Positions 1,353-23,880 of a stretch of DNA of 64,000 bases are shown here, piece by piece. A program made the translations under genes and the position numbers. The number at the start of each line of letters is the position of its first letter. Position 1 is the first letter of the stretch. Where the stretch lies: NCBI GenBank assembly GCA_038087875.1, contig CM075978.1, positions 60,016,001 through 60,080,000 on the forward strand, given 5' to 3'. This DNA is from Malacoraja senta. Taxonomy: Eukaryota. The notes beneath the pieces are model-generated. The model had not been told where the DNA came from and did not search any database. It was given only the letters and a program-made list of their open reading frames with translations.

Positions 1353-1412
1353 TTTAACATAGTAAAAGTAGTACGTGATTGAACGTAGATGGACTCCATA
1401 ATATAAAATGCT

Positions 1413-1551
1413 TCTTCTTCTTGCGTATGGCGTGCACAGCCTAAAGTTGTAAGACAACTTGTTCTATTTGATCTTATTAGGTTGTGCACGACAGGTTGAT
1501 TGCATTCGTCGAAACAGGGTGGACCACGTGAAGGTTGCAATCTTCCACCCC
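1413..1551 (-). mobile_element. ~140-nt ribozyme-headed short retroposon, copy 1
   Basis: 12-bp TSD ATATAAAATGCT (1401-1412 / 1552-1563), (AAG)n 3' tail, and a homologous copy at 22953-23090. Confidence 0.85.
1498..1551 (-). ncRNA. Minimal HDV-like self-cleaving ribozyme (54 nt)
   Basis: GGGGUGG(P1)-AA-GAUUGCA(P2)-ACC(P3)-UUCACGU(L3)-GGU(P3')-CCACCCU(P1')-G-UUUCGA(reduced P4)-C-GAA-UGCAAUC(P2'). All pairings checked by eye. Confidence 0.85.
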
Positions 1552-2461
1552 ATATAAAATGCTCACGTACAGACATACAGTGGGTGGACATTAACGTAAC
1601 GTATTCACATCAGCACGCTCTTTTATACAAATGGAAGATCGCCACACTTGAATAGAATATACACTTGACAAAGGTCATACATTTGGCCATAAACATACTT
1701 TGATGGCCAATGACTATGCACTGGGGTGGCTGCACAGTCATGCCTGCAACTTGTTGTTACTTCATTTGGCCCAGCAGTAAACTATGGCCTTACCACATGC
1801 CTGAATAATGTAGTGATGATGGATTCCATTTTAAACGTCTCTTCACCCTCAACCCCGTTGGCCAGGAGGAGGTTGGGGGAAATGGGCTGTGCCACGGTTA
1901 GTTGAGTTGATTCTCCACAACCTCACCTACCTCCGGTGCTGTATGTGTCGAATTTACATGCTTTTCCTGTGACTGTCAATGGTTCCTTCTGTTGGGTTAT
2001 GTCCGCGCCCGGGTGGTACTTGAGAGGGACTATGCACTGTCCACGGGCACCCTGGTGGATTTCTGGGACCACTGGGCACCGCAGGAAGGTGGAATGTTTC
2101 CTTGACAAGGATTCTGATATGGTTGTTTAATATTCAGTATTTAAGAATATTTGTTTTACTTGTATTATGGTGGTGGGTTTATTGGTATTGTTTTAAGGTC
2201 ATAAGTAATAGGAGCAGAATTAGGCCATTCGGCGCATCAAGACTACTCTGCTATTCAATCATGGCTGATCTATCTCTCCCTCCAAACCTCTTCTCCCCAT
2301 AACTACTGACACCCATACTGATCAAGTGGGTGACGTTTCGGGCCAGAGCCCTTCCACTTTATAGACAAAGCTCCACATTGTGTCTATCCATATTTTCCTC
2401 CCAAGCAGTGCTTTCCTGGGAATATTTTACTGTTGTTCATTATATTGTTCATAATATTGTA

Positions 2462-4007: not shown

Positions 4008-7000
4008 TCAGTATCCCGTACCTGCCTTCTCTCCATACCCCCTGACCCCTTTAGCCACAAGGGCCACATCTAATTCCCTCTTAAATATAGCCAATGAACT
4101 GGCCTCAACTACCCTCTGTGGCAGAGAGTTCCAGAGATTCACCACTCTCTGTGTGAAAAAGTTTTTCCTCATCTCGGTCTTAAAGGATTTCCCCCTTATC
4201 CTTAAGCTGTGACCCCTTGTCCTGGACTTCCCCAACATCGGGAACAATCTTCCTGCATCTAGCCTGTCCAACCCCATAAGAATTTTGTACGTTTCTATAA
4301 GATCCCCTCTCAATCTCCTAAATTCTAGCGAGTATAAGCCAAGTCTATCCAGTCTTTCTTCATATGAAAGTCCTGACATCCCAGGAATCAGTCTGGTGAA
4401 CCTTCTCTGCACTCCCTCTATGGCTATAATGTCCTTCCTCAGATTTGGAGACCAAAACTGTACGCAATACTCCAGGTGTGGTCTCACCAAGACCCTGTAC
4501 AACTGCAGTAGAACCTCCCTGCTCCTATACTCAAATCCTCTTGCTATGAAGGCCAACATACCATTCGCTTTCTTCACTGCCTGCTGCACCTGCATGCCTA
4601 CTTTCAATGACTGGTGTACCATGACACCCAGGTCTCGCTGCATCTCCCCATTTCCTAATCGGCCACCATTTAGATAATAGTCTGCCTTCCCGTTTTTGCT
4701 ACCAAAGTGGATAACCTCACATTTATCCACATTATACTGCATCTGCCAAACATTTGCCCACTCACCCAACCTATCCAAGTCACCTTGCAGTCTCCTAGCA
4801 TCCTCCTCACAGCTAACACTGCCCCCCAGCTTAGTGTCATCCGCAAACTTGGAGATGTTGCTTTCAATTCCCTCGTCCAGATCATTAATATAAATTGTAA
4901 ATAGCTGGGGTCCCAGCACTGAGCCTTGCGGTACCCCACTAGTCACTGGCTGCCATTGTGAAAAGGACCCGTTTACTCCTACTCTTTGCTTCCTGTTTGC
5001 CAGCCAGTTCTCTATCCACATCAATACTGAACCCCCAATACCGTGTGATTTAAGTTTGTATCCTAATCTCTTATGTGGTACCTTGTCGAAAGCCTTCTGA
5101 AAGTCCAGATACAACACATCCACTGGTTCTCCCCTATCCACTCTACTAGTTACATCCTCGAAAAATTCTATAAGATTCGTCAGACACGATTTACCTTTCG
5201 TAAATCCATGCTGACTTTGTCCAATGATTTCACCACTTTCCAAATGTGCTGCTATCCCATCTTTAATAACTGACTCTAGCAGTTTCCCCACTACCGATGT
5301 TAGACTAACTGGTCTGTAATTCCCCGTTTTCTCTCTCCCTCCCTTCTTAAAAAGTGGGGTTACGTTTGCTACCCTCCAATCCTCAGGAACTACTCCAGAA
5401 TCTAAAGAGTTTTGAAAAATTATCACTAATGCATCCACTATTTCTGGAGCTACTTCCTTAAGTACTCTGGGATGCAGCCTATCTGGCCCTGGTGATTTAT
5501 CGGCCTTTAATCCATTCAATTTACCCAACACCACTTCCCGACTAACCTGGATTTCACTCAGTTCCTCCATCTCCTTTGACCCGCGGCCCCCTGCTATTGC
5601 CGGCAGATTATTTATGTCTTCCTTAGTGAAGACGGAACCAAAGTAGTTATTCAATTGGTCTGCCATATCCTTGTTCCCCATGATCAATTCACCTGTTTCT
5701 GACCGCAAGGGACCTACATTTGATTTAACTAATCTCTTTCTCTTCACATATCTATACAAACTTTTGCAGTCAGTTTTTATGTTCCCTGCCAGTTTCCTTT
5801 CATAATCTATTTTCCCTTTCCTAATTAAGCCCTTTGTCCTCCTCTGCTGGTCTCTGAATTTCTCCCAGTCCTCTGGTATGCTGCTTTTTCTGGCTAATTT
5901 GTACGCATCATCTTTTGCTTTGATACTATCCCTGATTTCCCTTGTTATCCACGGATGCACTACCTTCCTTGATTTATTCTTTTGCCAAACTGGGATGAAC
6001 AATTTTTGTAGTTCATCCATGCAGTCTTTAAATGCCTTCCATTGCATATCCACCGTCAACCCTTTTAGAACTAATTGCCAGTCAATCTTGGCCAATTCAC
6101 GTCTCATACCCTCAAAGTTACCTTTCTTTAAGTTCAGAACCGTTGTTTCTGAATTAACAATGTCACTCTCCATCCTAATGAAGAACTCAACCATATTATG
6201 ATCACTCTTGCCCAAGGGGGCACGCACAACAAGTCTGCTAACTAACCCTTCCTCATTACTCAATACCCAGTCTAGAATAGCCTGCTCTCTCGTTGGTTCC
6301 TCTACATGTTGGTTTAGATAACTATCCCTCATACATTCCAAGAAATCCTCTTCCTCAGCACCCCTGCCAATTTGATTCACCCAATCTATATGTAGATTGA
6401 AGTCACCCATTATAACTGTTTTGCCTTTGTTGCACGCATTTCTAATTTCCTGTTTGATGCCATCCCCAACTTCACTACTACTGCTAGGTGGCCTGTACAC
6501 AACACCCACCAGCGTTTTCTGCCCCTTAGTGTTTCGCAGCTCTACCCATACCGATTCCACATCCTCCAAGCTAATGTCCTTCCTTTCCACTGCGTTAATC
6601 TCCTCTCTAACCAGCAACGCTACCCCACCTCCTTTTCCTTTCTCTCTATCCCTCCTGAATATTGAATATCCCTGGATGTTCAGCTCCCAGCCTTGGTCAC
6701 CTTGGAGCCATGTCTCCGTGGTCCCAACTATATCATAATCATTAATTGCTATCTGCACGTTCAACTCATCCACCTTATTACGAATGCTCCTTGCATTGAG
6801 ACACAAAGCCTTCAGGCTTGTTTTTACAACGCTCTTACCCCTTATACAATTATGTTGAAAAGTGGCTCTTTTTGATTTTTGCCCTGGATTTGTCTGCCTG
6901 CCACTTTTACCTTTCACCTTGCTACCTATTGCTTCTGCCCGCATTTTACACCCCTCTGTTTCTCTGCTCACCCATTTAAGAACCCCACCACCTCTTATTC

Positions 7001-7133
7001 TCTGTTTATTATTGTTTTCTTCTTTCCCCCCTACATGTTGGGTCTGAGTGCTTTCCCTCTCTGCCTCCTGCCTCACACACTGTCTAATAGCATTCTCTAT
7101 TTGAGTCCCTCCCCCCAACCATTCTAGTTTAAA
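4008..7133 (-). CDS. CR1 ORF2: APE endonuclease + reverse transcriptase
   Basis: Motifs LNARSIRNK, ETWL, GDFN, SDHN (endonuclease) and YLDFQKAFDKV, GVPQGSVLGP, FADD (RT), with no internal stops. The true start is uncertain (frameshift site at 7133 or Met near 6944). Confidence 0.93.
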   Translation of the reverse strand, partial: FKLEWLGGGTQIENAIRQCVRQEAERESTQTQHVGGKEENNNKQRIRGGGVLKWVSRETEGCKMRAEAIGSKVKGKSGRQTNPGQKSKRATFQHNCIRGKSVVKTSLKALCLNARSIRNKVDELNVQIAINDYDIVGTTETWLQGDQGWELNIQGYSIFRRDREKGKGGGVALLVREEINAVERKDISLEDVESVWVELRNTKGQKTLVGVVYRPPSSSSEVGDGIKQEIRNACNKGKTVIMGDFNLHIDWVNQIGRGAEEEDFLECMRDSYLNQHVEEPTREQAILDWVLSNEEGLVSRLVVRAPLGKSDHNMVEFFIRMESDIVNSETTVLNLKKGNFEGMRRELAKIDWQLVLKGLTVDMQWKAFKDCMDELQKLFIPVWQKNKSRKVVHPWITREIRDSIKAKDDAYKLARKSSIPEDWEKFRDQQRRTKGLIRKGKIDYERKLAGNIKTDCKSLYRYVKRKRLVKSNVGPLRSETGELIMGNKDMADQLNNYFGSVFTKEDINNLPAIAGGRGSKEMEELSEIQVSREVVLGKLNGLKADKSPGPDRLHPRVLKEVAPEIVDALVIIFQNSLDSGVVPEDWRVANVTPLFKKGGREKTGNYRPVSLTSVVGKLLESVIKDGIAAHLESGEIIGQSQHGFTKGKSCLTNLIEFFEDVTSRVDRGEPVDVLYLDFQKAFDKVPHKRLGYKLKSHGIGGSVLMWIENWLANRKQRVGVNGSFSQWQPVTSGVPQGSVLGPQLFTIYINDLDEGIESNISKFADDTKLGGSVSCEEDARRLQGDLDRLGEWANVWQMQYNVDKCEVIHFGSKNGKADYYLNGGRLGNGEMQRDLGVMVHQSLKVGMQVQQAVKKANGMLAFIARGFEYRSREVLLQLYRVLVRPHLEYCVQFWSPNLRKDIIAIEGVQRRFTRLIPGMSGLSYEERLDRLGLYSLEFRRLRGDLIETYKILMGLDRLDAGRLFPMLGKSRTRGHSLRIRGKSFKTEMRKNFFTQRVVNLWNSLPQRVVEASSLAIFKRELDVALVAKGVRGYGEKAGTGY

Positions 7134-7960
7134 GTCTCCCCAGTAGCCTTTGCAGATCTCCCCGCCAGGATATCGGTCCCCCTCAGGTTCAAGTGCAACC
7201 CATCCTTTTTGTACAGGTCGAACCTTCCACAAAAGAGGTCCCAATGATCCAGAAATTTGAATCCCTGCCTTCTGCACCAGTCCTTCAGCCACGTATTTAT
7301 CCTCCACCTCGCTCCATTCCTACTCTCACTGTCGCGTGGTACAGGCAGTAATCCCGAGATTGTTACCTTTGCTGTCCTTCTCTTTAACTCCCCTCCTAAC
7401 TCCCTAAATTCTCCTTTCAGGACCTCTTCTCTTTTTTTACCTATGTCATTGGTACCTATATGTATCACGACCTCGGGCTCCTCTCCCTGCCCTTTCAGGA
7501 TGTCTTGGACACGTTGAGACACATCACAGACCCTGGCACCAGGGAGGCAAACTACCATCCGGGTCTCCCGACTGCGTCCACAGAATCGCCTGTCTGACCC
7601 CCTAACTATAGAGTCCCCTATTAATATTGCCCTCCTCTTCTTTTCCTTACCCTTCTGAGCAACAGGACCGGTCTCTATACCGGAGGCCCGGCCGCTGTCG
7701 CTACCCCCAGGTAGGCTGCCCACCCCAACAGTGCTCAAACAGGAGTACTTATTGTCAAGGTGTACAGCCACCGGAGTACTCTCTAGTCCCTGCCTGTGCC
7801 CCTTGCCTCTCCCAACCGTGATCCACTTGCCTGCCTCCTGTGGTGTTGGAGTGACCACATCCCTGTAACTCCTCTCAATGACTTCCTCGCTCTCCCTGAC
7901 CAGACGGAGGTCATCGAGCTGCTGCTCCAGGTTCCTAATACGGTCCATTAGGAGCCCCAT
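7124..7960 (-). CDS. CR1 ORF1 C-terminal part: coiled coil + SGNH/GDSL esterase
   Basis: IGDSIVR (block I), CLPGA, HIGTNDI (block III), DGLHLN (block V). The N-terminus is lost by truncation. Confidence 0.9.
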   Translation of the reverse strand: MGLLMDRIRNLEQQLDDLRLVRESEEVIERSYRDVVTPTPQEAGKWITVGRGKGHRQGLESTPVAVHLDNKYSCLSTVGVGSLPGGSDSGRASGIETGPVAQKGKEKKRRAILIGDSIVRGSDRRFCGRSRETRMVVCLPGARVCDVSQRVQDILKGQGEEPEVVIHIGTNDIGKKREEVLKGEFRELGGELKRRTAKVTISGLLPVPRDSESRNGARWRINTWLKDWCRRQGFKFLDHWDLFCGRFDLYKKDGLHLNLRGTDILAGRSAKATGETLN

Positions 7961-13935: not shown

Positions 13936-14719
13936 GCTCTCCAGAGAGGAGATTACTGCAAGCATTTCAATGTGCAGGAACAATATTCACCATGGTTTAC
14001 GGAGAATTAGGGAGAGATCTATTGAAGATGGCTTGATGTAGGGAGAGGTTGAGAACCTATAAAACAAGGGTCACTATCCCAGAACAAGGGGAAGGCCGAT
14101 CGGGACTGAAAAGAGGAGATTTCTTAACTCAGAGGTGGAGAATCTCTGGAATTCTCTACCATGGCGGCCTTTGGAAGCCAAATTTTTTATCACGACTAAA
14201 GTTCACTCTAAAGCAGTAAGGCATGGAGGGGCGAGGATTAGTTTTGTGAGACCACCAAACAACAAGTAGACACAAAAAGCTGGAGTAACTCAGCGGGTCA
14301 GGCAGCATCTCTGGAGAAAAGGAATAGGTGACGTTTAGGGTCGAGACCCTTCTTCAGACAGAGTCAGGAAAAAGGGAAACGAGAGATATAGACGGTAATG
14401 TAGAGAGATATAGAATAAATGAATGAAAGATATGCAAAAAAAGTACTGATGATAACGGAAACATGCCATTGTTAGCTGTGTGTTAGGTGAAAACGAGTTA
14501 CAGACAGGTTTAAACCAGCATCTGCAGTTCCTTCCTACACATGTTTATCAAGTACTTGGCTCAAGGTCTTGTGCAGTGCAGAAAGGCCTTACACATTAGA
14601 ACATGCACAATGTGTTGTCTCTCTCAGCCATAGATGTGGGTGGGAGGGGAGGAAGAATGAAGTGTTTGGGAGAGGAGTTTGTGGAAGTCATATCAAAAAG
14701 TGACATCGTTTTTTTAAAG

Positions 14720-15827: not shown

Positions 15828-18227
15828 TGTGGCGGTTCCTAGTGAGTAGGCCACTTCCTGGTTCATCCCCCTCAGCACTTGATGGACAGGTCCGGGGGCG
15901 GCTTCCAGCTACGAAGATAAGAGCAGGGATTTTAGGCGCGAGACCAGTTTTCAGTGTCTCACTGAAGCGGAGAGTAGTGTGCTGTGCTCATTAAAGCCTC
16001 AACAGAATTTGTCTAGCTTTTCGCCGTCATTCCGGGCTCTCTCATGCACCCGCCACACCGATGACCCTCGACATTTCGGCGCAAGTCGCGATGGACCCGA
16101 ATGTTCTACAGGACGCACAACCCGGTCAACCGTCCTTGGACCATGCCGGTCAACCGTCCTTGGGTCCTGCCGGCCCTGCTGATCTCCACGCCGTTGCGCT
16201 GAAGCTGCCTACCCTGTGGACTGACGAGCCCGGAATCTAGTTTGACCAGGCCGAGGCGCAGTTTGCACTGCGGGGCGTTTCAGTCGACGCTTCCGGTTGT
16301 AGCGGTTGGCGCGGTGCTAGAGCAGCTGATCGACGGGCTTTGGCGGCCTCTGGCCTTATTCAGCAGGCACCTCAGCGGCGCACCGCGGCACTACAGTGCC
16401 TTTGACCGCGAGCTCCTCGCCCTTTACCTCAGCGTGCGCCACTTCCGTTACTTTTTGGACGGACATTTACAGCTTACATGGACCACAAGCCCCTCAACTT
16501 TGCGTTCGCCAAGATTTCTGACCCGTGGTCCACTCGCCAGCAGCGGCAGTTGGCGTTCGTCTCGTAATACACTACCTCCAGTCGTTTCATCGAGGGCAAA
16601 GACAACAGAGTAGCCAACGACTTGTCTCGTCCCGCGGTCAACGCCGTTTTACAGGTGTCCAATGGCATTGATTACTCAGCCCAGGCTGCTACCCAGCTGA
16701 CGGATGATGAGATGTCCGCCTATCGTACCGCAGTTTCGGGCCTGCGGTTGGAGGACGTTCCATGTGGCCCCGGGGGTGCGAGGCTGCTGTGCGACAACTC
16801 GACTGGTCAGCCGCGGCCCATCGTCCCCGTCGCCTGGCGGCGCAGAGTGTTCGAGGTGCTCCACGGGCTGGCCCACCCTTCTATTCGGGCAACGCCGGCC
16901 CTCGTGGCTTCCTGTTTCATGTGGCACGGGTTGCGCAAACAGGTTGGGCATTGGGCGCGCACCTGCATCCCGTGCCAAACTGCCAAGGTACAGCGGCATG
17001 TGCGGGCACCGCTCCAGGAGTTCCGCGTCCCTCGCCAGCGGTTTGACCATATCCACGTGGACATCGTGGGACCGCTGCCGCCTTCTCGGGACTTCACCCT
17101 CCTCGTGGTCGACCATTTCACGCGGTGGCCGGATGCGGTTCCATTGGCAGACACCTCTGCGGCCACGTGTGCCCGTGCTTTGGCGGCACAATGGATTGCC
17201 CGATTCAGAGTGCCGCTGGACATTACGTCCGACCGGGGTCCTCAGTTCACATCTGAACTCTGGCAGCCATGGCTCGCCTTCTCGGGGTTAACCTGCACCG
17301 CACCACGGTGTATCATCCGCAGGCGAACGGCCTGGTGGAGCATTTCCACCGCAAGCTCAAGGCTGCCCTGAAGGTTCGGCTCACGCACCTGGACTGGGTC
17401 GGCGCATTGCCGTGGGTTTTGCTGGGTGTCCGCACCGTGCCCAAAGAGGACCTGGCCACCTCCTCAGCTGAGTTGGTGTACGGGGCCCCGCTGACAGTGC
17501 CCGGTGAGTTTATCCCATCAGCACAGGGCCAGGCGGAGCGGCCATCAGCCGCCCTGCAACGGCTTCGGCAGACCGTGGGCAAGCTGGCACCGGTGCCGAC
17601 GTCTCGCCACATTTCGTTCAGGCCGCACGTTCCTTCCGCTCTCCAGGACTGCCCGTTTTCCTGCGTCGGGACGCGCACCGGACGCCCCTTCAGTGGCCGT
17701 ACGAAGGACCATTCAAGGTCCTCGAGTATGGCCCTTTCACTTTCGTTTTGGACATGGGGGGTCGTCGTGAGACGGTCTTGCGCGGCTGAAGCCGGCACAC
17801 GTGGACATCAGCTACTTGCGTGACCTCGCCCTCGGGGTCGCCCTCGGTTCCGGCCCTTTCCCCAAGCGCCCGCGCCGCCACCTTCGCCTGGCAGTGTGTA
17901 TCCGGTTCCTGCGCCCGCCATGGTGCGCACACGGGCTAGTCGTCCCGTATGTCCCCCTGTCCGTTTCGTGCCTCCGGTTCTTGGGGGGGGGGGGTCCTGT
18001 GGCGGTTCCTGGGGAGAGGGCCACTCCCTGGTTCATCCCCCTCGGCACTTAATAGACAGGTCCAGGGGCGGCTTCCAGCTACAAAGATAAGAGCAGAGAT
18101 TTTTGGCGCGAGACTAGTTTTCAGTCTCTCACTGAAGCAGAGAGTATTGTGCTGTGCTCATTAAAGCCTCTACAGAATTTGCCTGGCTCCTCGCCTTCAT
18201 TCCGGGCTCTCTCATGCACCCGCTACA
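15828..18227 (+). mobile_element. Gypsy/Ty3 LTR retrotransposon, internally deleted
   Basis: 230-bp TG...CA LTRs at 15828-16057 and 17998-18227, 4-bp TSD GTAC, G-run PPT at 17983-17994, degenerate PBS. Remnants of gag start (LKLPTLW), RNase H (YSAFDRELLA) and integrase (HHCC zinc finger, HVDIVGPLP, SDRGPQF, YHPQANGLVE) with frameshifts. Confidence 0.95.
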
Positions 18228-18598: not shown

Positions 18599-21495
18599 TT
18601 GATTAATATTTTTATTAGAAGCAAACATATTATAAAGTATAGTAACATATTATAATAGAAAAAAAAACTTTTCATATACATCAATCATACATTATTAAAA
18701 TTGTCAATTGTCAATTAATTCTGCTTCTAGTGGGTTTTTTTTTGTTTTTTTTTATATAGATAGAAAAAGAGAGGTAGAAAGAAAAAAGCATTACAAATAT
18801 CGAGAAGAAAAAAAAAGAGGTGGAATGAGTTATTTATAATACGTCATTGGAGATAAGTTCGTAGGTTATGATAATTTTACATCTAATCCTGAGTTCAAGC
18901 TTCAGTTGGGTTTTCGTGCTGGGCCCATCTATCCCTTCAAATAGTTAATGAATGGAGCCCATATTTTAACAAAAAGTTCTTGTTTGTCCATTAAGACAAG
19001 TCTAATTCTTTCTAGATGTAGGGTCTCCGACATTTCCACAATCCACATTTTAATTGTGGGGGTTATAGGACCTATCCAAAATTTTAATATTAATTTTTTC
19101 CCAGTTATTATACTGTAGTCAAGGAAGTTTCTTTGGCTTGTTGTGAGTATTAAACTTTGTTCTGATATCCCAAGTATTATTAATTTTGAGTCTGGATCCA
19201 ATTTAGTATTAACAACTTCAGAAATTATTTCAAAAATATCAATCCAGAAATTTTTGATTTTTATACAATTTGCAAAAGTATGTGTTAAATTGGCCTCCAG
19301 ATGTAGGTATTTATCACAGAGAGGAGAAATATGTGGGAAGATTCTATTTAGTTTTATTTTGGAATAATGTAATCTGTTGTATTAAAGCATGTCTGGCATT
19401 TAACGAGCATTGATGTATATGTTGTAAACTTTCGTCCCAAATGTCTTTCGTTATAGAGTGACCTAACTCATTTTCCCATGTTTGTCTATATAGTTCCATC
19501 GGTGGTACCTCATTGTTTAAGAGGATGTTATAGATATAAGCTATTAATTTTTCAGTGTTAGGATGCTTATTCAAACATTCATCAAGAATTTCTGGTTCCC
19601 TAGTCCTATATACTTGTGTATTAGATTTAACATAATCTCTAATTTATAGATATCTGAAAAAATTATTTGAGTGTAGTCCATAATTCTGTTGTAACTCTTG
19701 AAATGACAGAAAGATGCCTTCCCTATAAAGATGTCCAATCTTTTTAATTCCATAATTTTTCCATTGTATAAAACCTCTATCCAATATGGATGGCTTGAAT
19801 AAAGGATTATTTACAATGGGAAGACATAGTGGTATATTATTCAGTTTTAAAGCTTTTTTTAATTGTTTCCAAATTCGTATTCCACTATGTATTATAGGGT
19901 TTTCCTTATAGGTTTTTTTATGCAATTTTGTGGGAGCAAGTATAATCGAACCAATTTCAAAAGGTAAACAGTCTTCCTTTTCCATCCTTAACCAATCTGG
20001 ATATTGATCCATTTCTTCCAGCCAGAAATTCATGTTTTTAATATGGACTGCCCAAAAATAAAATAAGAAATTTGGCAAAGCCAAACCTCCATTGCTCTTT
20101 GACTTACATAAATGTTTTTAACTTATTCTATGATTCTTATAATCCCAAATAAAGCTTGTAACAATGGAGTCGACTTTTTTGAAAAAGTTTTTTGGGATAT
20201 ATATCGGAATTAATTGAAATAGATACAGTAGTTGCGGTAAGAAGATCATTTTTATAGCATTAATTCTACCAAGCATTGAAATGGGAATTGTTTTCCAGTA
20301 CTGAATATTCTTGTGTAATTTATTAAGTAAGGGTGGAAAATTTAGTTTAAATAAAGAGGTATATGTCTTAGTTACATAGATTCCTAAATATTTAAGTTTA
20401 TCTTTAACTATTTTAAAAGGGGATTGTTGCAATGTATTTGAATTGAATTTTGTTATTGGCATAATTTCACTTTTATTCCAGTTAATTCTATATCCTGAGA
20501 ACTGACCAAATTGAGTTATTAGATTTAATAGATTTGGAATACTAGTTTCTAACTTTGTGATATATATTAGTACATCATCTGCATATAAGGAAATTTTATT
20601 CCTTGTATCTCTAGTGTTGTACCCGTGTATTCCTGAATGGGTTCTAACGCTTTCTGCTAATGGTTCAATTGCAAGAGCAAATAATAGTGGGGATAGTGAG
20701 CATCCTTGTCTGCAACCTCTAGAAAGATTAAATTTAGCTGATAACATTTGGTTTGTTAATATTCTAGCTGTTGGATTGGAGTATAACAGTTTAATCCATA
20801 TACAGTACTTCTCTCCTAGTTGAAATTTTTCCATTACCGAAAATAAATATGACCATTCTACCTGGTCAAATGCTTTTTCAGCATCTAACGATATAATTGC
20901 TAGATCTGCATTAGGAATTCTATTTGTATATATAATATTGAATAGTCTTCTCAAATTATAAAATGAGTAACGTTTTGGAATAAAACCAGTTTGGTCGGGG
21001 TGTATTAATTTGTTAATCACTAAGCTCAATCTATGAGATAGGATTTTGGTTAATATTTTTTGAGAGCTATTGCTCTATATGAACCTGGGTCTTCAGGATC
21101 CTTATCCGTTTTTGGTATAAGTATGATTGTAGATTCATTTAGAGTTTCTGGGAGTTTCTGTTGAGTATAAACGTATTTGTATAGTGTCTGTAGGCGTGGA
21201 GAAATCAGATCGTAATTTTTTTAATAACATTCAGAGCTTAGACCATCAGGACCTGAGGCCTTTCCGTTTTTTAAAGATCTAATTGACTCTACGATGTCTT
21301 TTACCGTAATTTCTGCATCTAGTGATTCTCTCTCTTTCTGATCTAAACCTGTAAGGTTACATTTCTGTAGAAATGTTTCCATTCCTGCTGATTGTTCTGT
21401 CGTTTTAGATGAGTACAGTTTTTGATAGTATTGTAAAAATCTATCATTTATATCTTTAGGCAGTGTTAATATTTCTCCCTTGTCTGATCTAATTT
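18599..21495 (-). mobile_element. L1-clade LINE, 5'-truncated, frameshifted
   Basis: RT motifs HPDQTGF, LDAEKAFD, GCRQGCSLSPLLF, YADD, KYLGI. AATAAA at 18611-18616. Candidate 11-bp TSD TGTAA(T/G)ATCCT at 18588-18598 / 21496-21506. Confidence 0.92.
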
Positions 21496-22952: not shown

Positions 22953-23090
22953 TTCTTCATCTTTCGTGTGGCGTGCACGGCCTAAAGTTGTTGGACAACT
23001 TGTTCTATTTGATCTTCCGTTTGTGCACGTCGAGTTGATTGCATTAGTCGAAACAGGGCGGACCAAGTGAAGGTTGCAATCTTCCACCCC
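22953..23090 (-). mobile_element. ~140-nt ribozyme-headed short retroposon, copy 2
   Basis: TSD CAGGGGTTC (22944-22952 / 23092-23100, or 10 bp with one mismatch), AAG-type tail, and the same 5' end as copy 1. Confidence 0.85.
23037..23090 (-). ncRNA. Minimal HDV-like ribozyme, copy 2
   Basis: Same fold as copy 1. P1' is CCGCCCU (U-A becomes a U.G wobble), L3 is UUCACUU, J4/2 is CUAA, and the catalytic C is retained. Confidence 0.75.
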
Positions 23091-23107
23091 ACAGGGGTTC
23101 AGTGTAC

Positions 23108-23694: not shown

Positions 23695-23880
23695 GGAAGG
23701 TTTACACCGAAGATAGACGAAAAATACTGGAGTAACTCAGCGGGACAGGCAGCATCTCTGGAGAGAAGCATTCGGTGATATTTCAGTCTGAAGGTCTCGA
23801 CCCAAAACGTCACCCATTCCTTCTCTCCAGAGATGCTGCCTGCCCCACTGAGTTGCTCCAGCATTTTGTGTCTATCTTCC
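23695..23880. repeat. Inverted pair of Penelope-derived terminal repeats
   Basis: ~23708-23770 and ~23818-23879 are near reverse complements of each other. Confidence 0.7.

Follow-up and report, generated by a model that had tools for sequence, protein, structure and literature searches.

Layout of the element and its family

The 64,000-nucleotide stretch of the genome of the skate Malacoraja senta analysed here (contig CM075978.1 of assembly GCA_038087875.1, positions 60,016,001 to 60,080,000; hereafter the window, its first letter being position 1) carries on its minus strand, at 1411/12–1551, one copy of a retroposon of about 140 nucleotides whose first base, G1, is read at 1551. The upstream target-site duplication (TSD), AGCATTTTATAT, is 12 bp long, lies at 1552–1563 and abuts G1; the same 12 letters recur as the downstream TSD at 1401–1412, where an AG is common to the TSD and to the (AAG)4 microsatellite tail at 1411–1422, which is longer in many other copies. 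The first 54 nucleotides of the element (1498–1551) have the fold of a minimal hepatitis delta virus (HDV)/CPEB3-type ribozyme lacking the P4 helix, as judged by a structure descriptor, a pairing script and Rfam alignments. The 75-nucleotide 3′ domain that follows (1423–1497) folds into a long imperfect hairpin with the core CGUGCACA paired with UGUGCACG. By its sequence the element is built of two modules, the HDV-like head of 54 nucleotides and a 3′ module of 85 nucleotides of the type seen in long interspersed elements (LINEs), which comprises the hairpin and a variable (AAG)n tail. An earlier note on this DNA had given the letters and coordinates of the 1551–1498 fold, a 12-bp TSD directly before G1 and an (AAG)n tail, and re-reading, including the letters at 1563–1552, 1412–1401 and 1422–1411, bore these out.

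Three full-length copies were read, each with a different TSD, and in their alignment GGGG marks the precise start of the similarity, which ends within the tail. Copy 1 is the element at 1551–1412. Copy 2 lies at 23090–22953, also on the minus strand, is 88% identical to copy 1 and keeps the fold; its G1 is at 23090 and its TSD, AACCCCTG, at 23099–23092 and 22951–22944, with one extra T (23091) between AACCCCTG and G1. Its head differs in a U5-A32 pair that has become U·G, in G25>U in the loop L3 and in G45>U. Copy 3, in a European Nucleotide Archive (ENA) contig (L003:3200–3336), is 89% identical to copy 1 and is flanked by TTGCCACAGAAG(G). The TSDs are thus 12, 8–9 and 12–13 bp long in copies 1, 2 and 3, and all three copies end in (AAG)n and sit at AT-rich sites of variable sequence. 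The third copy was reached by way of a spurious open reading frame (ORF) of 90 amino acids, P0122, which was the one real match in a HMMER protein scan with the 46-amino-acid translation of copy 2; the other match, P0121, a cysteine-rich repeat protein, was spurious. The same translation gave no candidate in a word-indexed protein search, and a protein search with P0122 returned only itself. No copy of the element was present in two further loci, L001 and L002, fetched through relatives of a window reverse transcriptase at 20118–21029, and the invariant 23-mer of the head had 0 exact matches when searched for in JGI metagenome contigs. Copy 3 sits inside another repeat (L003:3120–3360), and the sequence of that repeat, ...GGAATTCATTGCCACAGAAGGCTGTGGA..., runs on across the TSD; the element therefore inserts into other repeats too.

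The size of the family and the constancy of its 5′ end were seen when reads and contigs were aligned to the element at 80% or more identity. From the contigs of three runs with three organism labels, 12,460, 17,832 and 15,413 pieces align, and in all three the depth of alignment is confined to 1411/12–1551/52. Letters past G1 agree in only 0.34–0.35 of cases in these contigs, so the upstream flanks are unrelated; they are AT-rich. The same sharp limits were found in RNA, both in the raw reads of two runs and in two sets of contigs, and across four runs, each with a different organism label, the similarity starts at G1 or one T earlier and stops at the tail. Beyond the tail, loose ends frequently run on as ...CTTCTT (at 1411), which shows that the length of (AAG)n varies. 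Among the 31-mers sampled from the element or its locus, runs with nine organism labels contain at least one third. The 3′ domain is far more variable than the head and splits into at least two subfamilies. By these sequence matches the family has many thousands of copies in Malacoraja senta and its relatives. The earlier claim of a family resembling short interspersed elements (SINEs), with TSDs and a microsatellite tail, is thus upheld by the three copies, and its very high copy number is seen in the contig pieces, which exceed 10,000 in every run. The common 5′ end at G1, which the earlier note had set beforehand as a test, was found, the depth stopping at 1551/52 beside unrelated flanks.

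Read on the element strand, roughly half of the copies have a T directly before G1 (window 1552 and 23091). Loose ends at 1552 and 1551 numbered 250 versus 197, 149 versus 136 and 653 versus 561. This T could stem from non-templated addition in reverse transcription or from a target-site preference.

A P4-less HDV-like fold in the head

Helix P1 is formed by GGGGUGG at 1551–1545 and CCACCCU at 1522–1516 (positions 1–7 with 30–36 of the element, the G1·U36 wobble included), and is followed by the joining segment J1/2, AA, at 1544–1543. P2 pairs GAUUGCA at 1542–1536 with UGCAAUC at 1504–1498 (10–16 with 48–54), and P3 pairs ACC at 1535–1533 with GGU at 1525–1523 (17–19 with 27–29), closing the loop L3 of sequence UUCACGU at 1532–1526 (20–26). 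Right after the second strand of P1 stands G37 (1515), the predicted P1.1 partner of C22 at 1530. The sole letters between G37 and C44 are UUUCGA at 1514–1509 (38–43), the L4 region, so that P4 is missing with the remaining fold intact. The putative catalytic C44 (1508) occupies the first position of J4/2 and is followed by GAA at 1507–1505 (45–47). A script found standard pairs in 17 of the 17 stem positions, and the descriptor and the pairing script together gave the order of a nested double pseudoknot, P1-P2-P3-L3-P3′-P1′-(P4)-J4/2-P2′. By architecture, then, the head is an HDV-like fold without P4. Each part of the HDV architecture proposed earlier, namely a 7-bp P1, a 7-bp P2, a 3-bp P3, L3, a single G, a UUCG loop and C-GAA, was recovered along with these pairs.

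The rarity of such a fold was gauged with an HDV descriptor of our own, which specified a 7-bp P1 with G1·U, a J1/2 of 0–3 nucleotides, a P2 of 5–8 bp, a 3-bp P3, an L3 of 7–8 nucleotides, a G after P1′, 3–40 nucleotides replacing P4, C-N-A-A and P2′, and which demanded no L3 motif. On both strands of the window (128 kb) it matched only this site and the copy at 23090, and in 60 dinucleotide-matched surrogates (7.7 Mb in total) it gave 0 matches. A looser descriptor, applied to the window and the three fetched loci, found only three sites, each of them a copy of the ribozyme-headed family. When a 61-nucleotide stretch was compared with 4227 Rfam models, only RF00094 HDV_ribozyme (16.4 bits, E 0.88, gathering threshold 50) and RF02682 HDV-F-prausnitzii (15.9 bits, E 0.23, gathering threshold 44) aligned; divided by 4227, the per-family E values are about 2e-4 and 5e-5, respectively. 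Both alignments are global, with P1 and P3 formed and the P4 region alone deleted, 5 nucleotides standing in its place. Over the whole window Rfam gave no match at gathering thresholds, and in E-value mode no further HDV-like matches. The comparison with Rfam HDV-like models that had been proposed earlier thus came out divided: HDV models alone align, and do so end to end, but their scores lie below threshold.

If the fold had arisen by chance in a short retroposon of the usual sort, scores under the gathering thresholds would be expected, and so would a nested minimum free energy (MFE) of the 54 nucleotides no better than that of shuffles, which is what was obtained (z = 0.06). The latter value is uninformative because the P2 pseudoknot cannot be counted. 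Against chance stand the empty 7.7 Mb of surrogates, the start of the fold at the very first base of the element, a core of the same length and letters as that of CPEB3, and the HDV models as the only ones aligning among 4227 families. Chance is accordingly regarded as a very improbable explanation of the HDV-like fold.

Variants of the head that reached 3% or more among the rows listed spare the fold. The most frequent are A>G at position 32 (54–90%), which turns U5-A into U5·G, and A>G at position 8 in J1/2 (44–66%). The nucleotide after the catalytic C, position 45, shows G>U in 12–41% and G>A in 4–8%. In P1, C>U at position 31 (6–9%) gives G6·U31 and U>C at position 36 (up to 5%) gives G1-C36. 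CpG-type transitions at positions 24, 25, 41, 42 and 44 (2–17%) fall in L3, L4 and C44. C44 itself is retained in 94–98% of read or contig depth in four runs. The common stem changes in those rows (31, 32 and 36) all preserve pairing, and substitutions ignoring the pairings, which would have spoken against the fold, were not seen there. Pairing holds in 54 of 54 cells when the three copies are aligned, through conservation and two one-sided wobble changes. What supports the structure, then, is its fit and the changes it tolerates rather than covariation.

Transcription, predicted cleavage and the origin of the 5′ end

A head recognised by RNA polymerase III (Pol III) was considered and rejected. 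A tRNA search found none in the element, Rfam even at E ≤ 10 gave, apart from the two HDV alignments, no 5S, 7SL, small nuclear RNA or other RNA-family similarity, and matches to the A and B boxes in the element were no better than in shuffles. A Pol III head is not supported, in agreement with the earlier statement that no tRNA, 5S or 7SL head is present, and by the classical criterion the element is no SINE. The element is transcribed inside longer RNAs, as had been supposed, and RNA reads cross both of its ends. In 5% of an oligo-dT RNA-seq run it was covered about 800–1300 reads deep per orientation. Poly(A)-selected RNA containing the element is, for the most part, either uncleaved or antisense.

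At 1309–1345, about 55 bp beyond the downstream TSD, and again at 14279–14314, lies a motif of 36–37 nucleotides, GCTGGAGGAACTCAGCAGGTCAGGCAGCATCTGTGG (minus strand). It was about 6000–7000 reads deep per orientation in the RNA runs, several-fold above the ribozyme element. Many reads go back 37 with a spacer of 29 nucleotides, which indicates that elsewhere the motif occurs in tandem units of about 66 nucleotides.

The reading favoured here, from sequence, is a non-autonomous retroposon that lacks a promoter, has a ribozyme at its head and obtains its 5′ end by self-cleavage, and the probability of this reading is put at roughly two in three. The element, having no promoter of its own, would be transcribed within longer RNA polymerase II (Pol II) transcripts, in keeping with the observed transcription across both ends. 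The putative ribozyme would cut 5′ of G1 and so make the exact 5′ end of the element RNA. The reverse transcriptase of a stringent-type LINE would then recognise the 3′ hairpin and tail and copy the RNA by target-primed reverse transcription. Such a course would yield the insertions seen, that is, full-length copies starting at G1 with TSDs of 8–13 bp at AT-rich sites. The most likely origin of the family, by analogy, is a LINE with a ribozyme at its head that underwent internal deletion, which would make the family a bipartite non-autonomous LINE.

Several results weigh against this reading. In the oligo-dT reads, 561 and 653 reads pass G1 into unlike flank, where the summed depth is about 1474, and no pile-up of read beginnings or ends at G1 was reported. 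The RNA libraries were unstranded and oligo-dT selected, and most copies are decayed. Because sense and antisense reads are mixed and cleaved RNAs may have been lost, the read-through does not refute cleavage and gives it no support. Among the three aligned copies there were 0 compensatory double changes, and covariation measures equalled those of shuffled controls. The scores for RF00094 and RF02682 fall far short of Rfam membership, and the CPEB3 model RF00622 gave no match to the head at E ≤ 10. A P1.1 with one G-C pair only, together with the lack of P4, means that activity may be low. The absence of P4 is in itself no argument against activity, since P4-less HDV-like ribozymes are active in vitro (PMC10879173). 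Finally, there is no other (AAG)4 tail and no other similarity to the element in the window.

The silent read ends and the plentiful read-through RNA, the lack of covariation in three copies and the weak Rfam scores would also be expected if the head were an inherited relic. An internally deleted LINE would then have kept its first 54 nucleotides, for instance for binding of a LINE protein or through the way in which the deletion arose, in a P4-less fold that no longer cleaves, and the uniform 5′ end would reflect complete reverse transcription of RNAs from few source copies. Bipartite non-autonomous LINEs do normally keep the 5′ end of the LINE (PMC5786205). This explanation is judged unlikely: with neither cleavage nor a promoter at G1, differing source loci would leave differing upstream sequence, whereas thousands of copies have unrelated flanks past G1 and the start is common to at least two subfamilies. 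Moreover, the head changes at subfamily level all spare the fold and C44, and P4-less HDV-like ribozymes do show activity in vitro (PMC10879173).

A fixed site of transcription initiation at G1 would predict the precise 5′ end equally well. The head would in that case hold an internal promoter like Pr77 of L1Tc/NARTc, with the ribozyme-like fold secondary or serving translation or protein binding, and Pr77 is indeed both a promoter and an HDV-like ribozyme (PMC3383444). The skate head, however, resembles neither tRNA nor 5S nor 7SL RNA and is without an A or B box, and RNA reads over it mostly continue upstream into the flank; initiation at G1 is rated somewhat more doubtful still than a relic. 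Self-cleavage at G1 remains the preferred account. In sum, the overall interpretation in the earlier note stands for the family, its 5′ end, the fold and the lack of a Pol III head, and no support was obtained for covariation, cleavage or a partner LINE.

As to that partner, the long hairpin formed by the 3′ domain of copy 1 has an MFE of −21.9 kcal/mol (z = −3.69; equalled by 0 of 200 shuffles), and the hairpin core CGUGCAC paired with GUGCACG is kept in other copies. This domain is presumed to be the recognition element for the reverse transcriptase of the partner LINE, and hairpin, microsatellite tail and TSDs fit a partner of the stringent type. Apart from the family copies, no element sharing the tail or the head was found in the window or in L001–L003.

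The window also holds an apparently intact CR1-type LINE at 4008–7960 on the minus strand, in which an ORF1 of 278 amino acids with a GDSL esterase domain overlaps an ORF2 of 1099 amino acids with endonuclease and reverse transcriptase; its tail differs from that of the ribozyme element. This CR1 and three other reverse-transcriptase fragments in the window were rejected as partners, as they share no tail with it. An ORF with Integrase_H2C2 and rve domains at 16622–17371 on the plus strand marks a fragment of a long terminal repeat (LTR) retroelement. At 23732–23857, some 650 bp from the second ribozyme copy, a long palindromic hairpin was matched on both strands by several microRNA-precursor models, each scoring far under its threshold (best 39.9 bits against a threshold of 73), and it is probably a remnant of an inverted-repeat transposon.

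Relation to known ribozymes and ribozyme-headed elements

In the mammalian CPEB3 ribozyme the catalytic C is followed by GAA, as in the skate element. The two have the same lengths up to position 38 and L3 is UUCACGU at 20–26, as in mouse Cpeb3. In the CPEB3 structure a 7-nucleotide L3 contains A23-C24-G25-U26, P1.1 consists of C22-G37 and U21·U38, and J1.1/4 is lacking (bioRxiv 10.1101/2022.09.22.508989); U20, U21, C22, A23, C24, G25, U26, G37 and U38 of the skate element are identical in letter and position. Unlike CPEB3, the skate element has no P4, and the Rfam model of CPEB3 does not match it. Its lack of P4 likens it, by architecture, to the minimal HDV-like ribozymes drz-Mtgn and theta, which are of the same size class with a short loop replacing P4; these show activity in vitro, and a C-to-U change of their catalytic cytosine abolishes it (PMC10879173). 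These differ in setting, nearly 99% being in bacteriophages and often beside tRNA genes, with no retroposon context reported (PMC10879173).

The R2 SIDEs (short internally deleted elements) of Drosophila, composed of a 5′ ribozyme and the 3′ end of an R2 element (PMC3414825), resemble the skate element in having no ORF, an HDV-like ribozyme that frees the 5′ end from a co-transcript and a LINE 3′ end for target-primed reverse transcription. They are rare, however, and confined to the 28S ribosomal DNA, and carry the large R2 ribozyme within their first ~184 nucleotides (PMC6765202), whereas the skate element is dispersed and very abundant in a vertebrate host, with a predicted ribozyme of 54 nucleotides and no P4. 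The other short non-autonomous elements of comparable design, NARTc, RIME and SIDER of trypanosomatids, likewise occur in very many copies within host transcripts, and share with L1Tc/ingi the Pr77 head, an HDV-like ribozyme whose cleavage was shown in vitro (PMC3185411, PMC4035085). That head is 77 nucleotides long and also an internal promoter (PMC3383444), and the hosts are protists with polycistronic transcription; there cleavage is experimental, while that of the skate element is predicted from its fold. Clades known to yield ORF-less bipartite non-autonomous LINEs are RTE, Ingi, Vingi and R2 (Kojima 2018, PMC5786205). Such elements join the extreme 5′ and extreme 3′ ends of a LINE and have a microsatellite tail, and the skate element may have been derived in the same way. 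Hundreds of genomic copies of an HDV-like ribozyme, with conserved downstream and variable upstream sequence, were described in a 2019 review (PMC6765202).

The design principle, a 5′ ribozyme replacing the promoter combined with a LINE 3′ end, is thus already published. In the literature searched, no paper contained the head sequence and none dealt with a self-cleaving ribozyme together with skate and retrotransposon. Nor does that literature describe such a family in a vertebrate, a retroposon headed by a P4-less fold of the CPEB3 type, or a copy number as high as this one. To this the present window adds a clean intact copy and checks at the level of the population.

If the head cleaves, the family would be an unusually small (140 nucleotides) self-processing retroposon in a vertebrate, and would provide P4-less minimal HDV-like ribozymes with a home among eukaryotes and an evident function; in the 2024 paper on theta ribozymes, nearly 99% of them in phages, origin and function were undetermined (PMC10879173). 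The core held in common with the mammalian CPEB3 ribozyme makes the origin of the latter testable. In a tentative scenario, which has only a small chance of being right, the CPEB3-type core would head an ancient vertebrate lineage of retroposons or LINEs whose activity persists in cartilaginous fish, and the CPEB3 intron ribozyme of mammals, present in a single copy, would be a domesticated remnant of such an element. P4-less minimal HDV-like ribozymes would then have their first natural source among eukaryotes in the skate family, which could cleave host transcripts at tens of thousands of sites. For the host, a head that cleaves would mean that sense copies in many transcripts lead to RNA cutting on a large scale, as proposed for the SIDERs of Leishmania.
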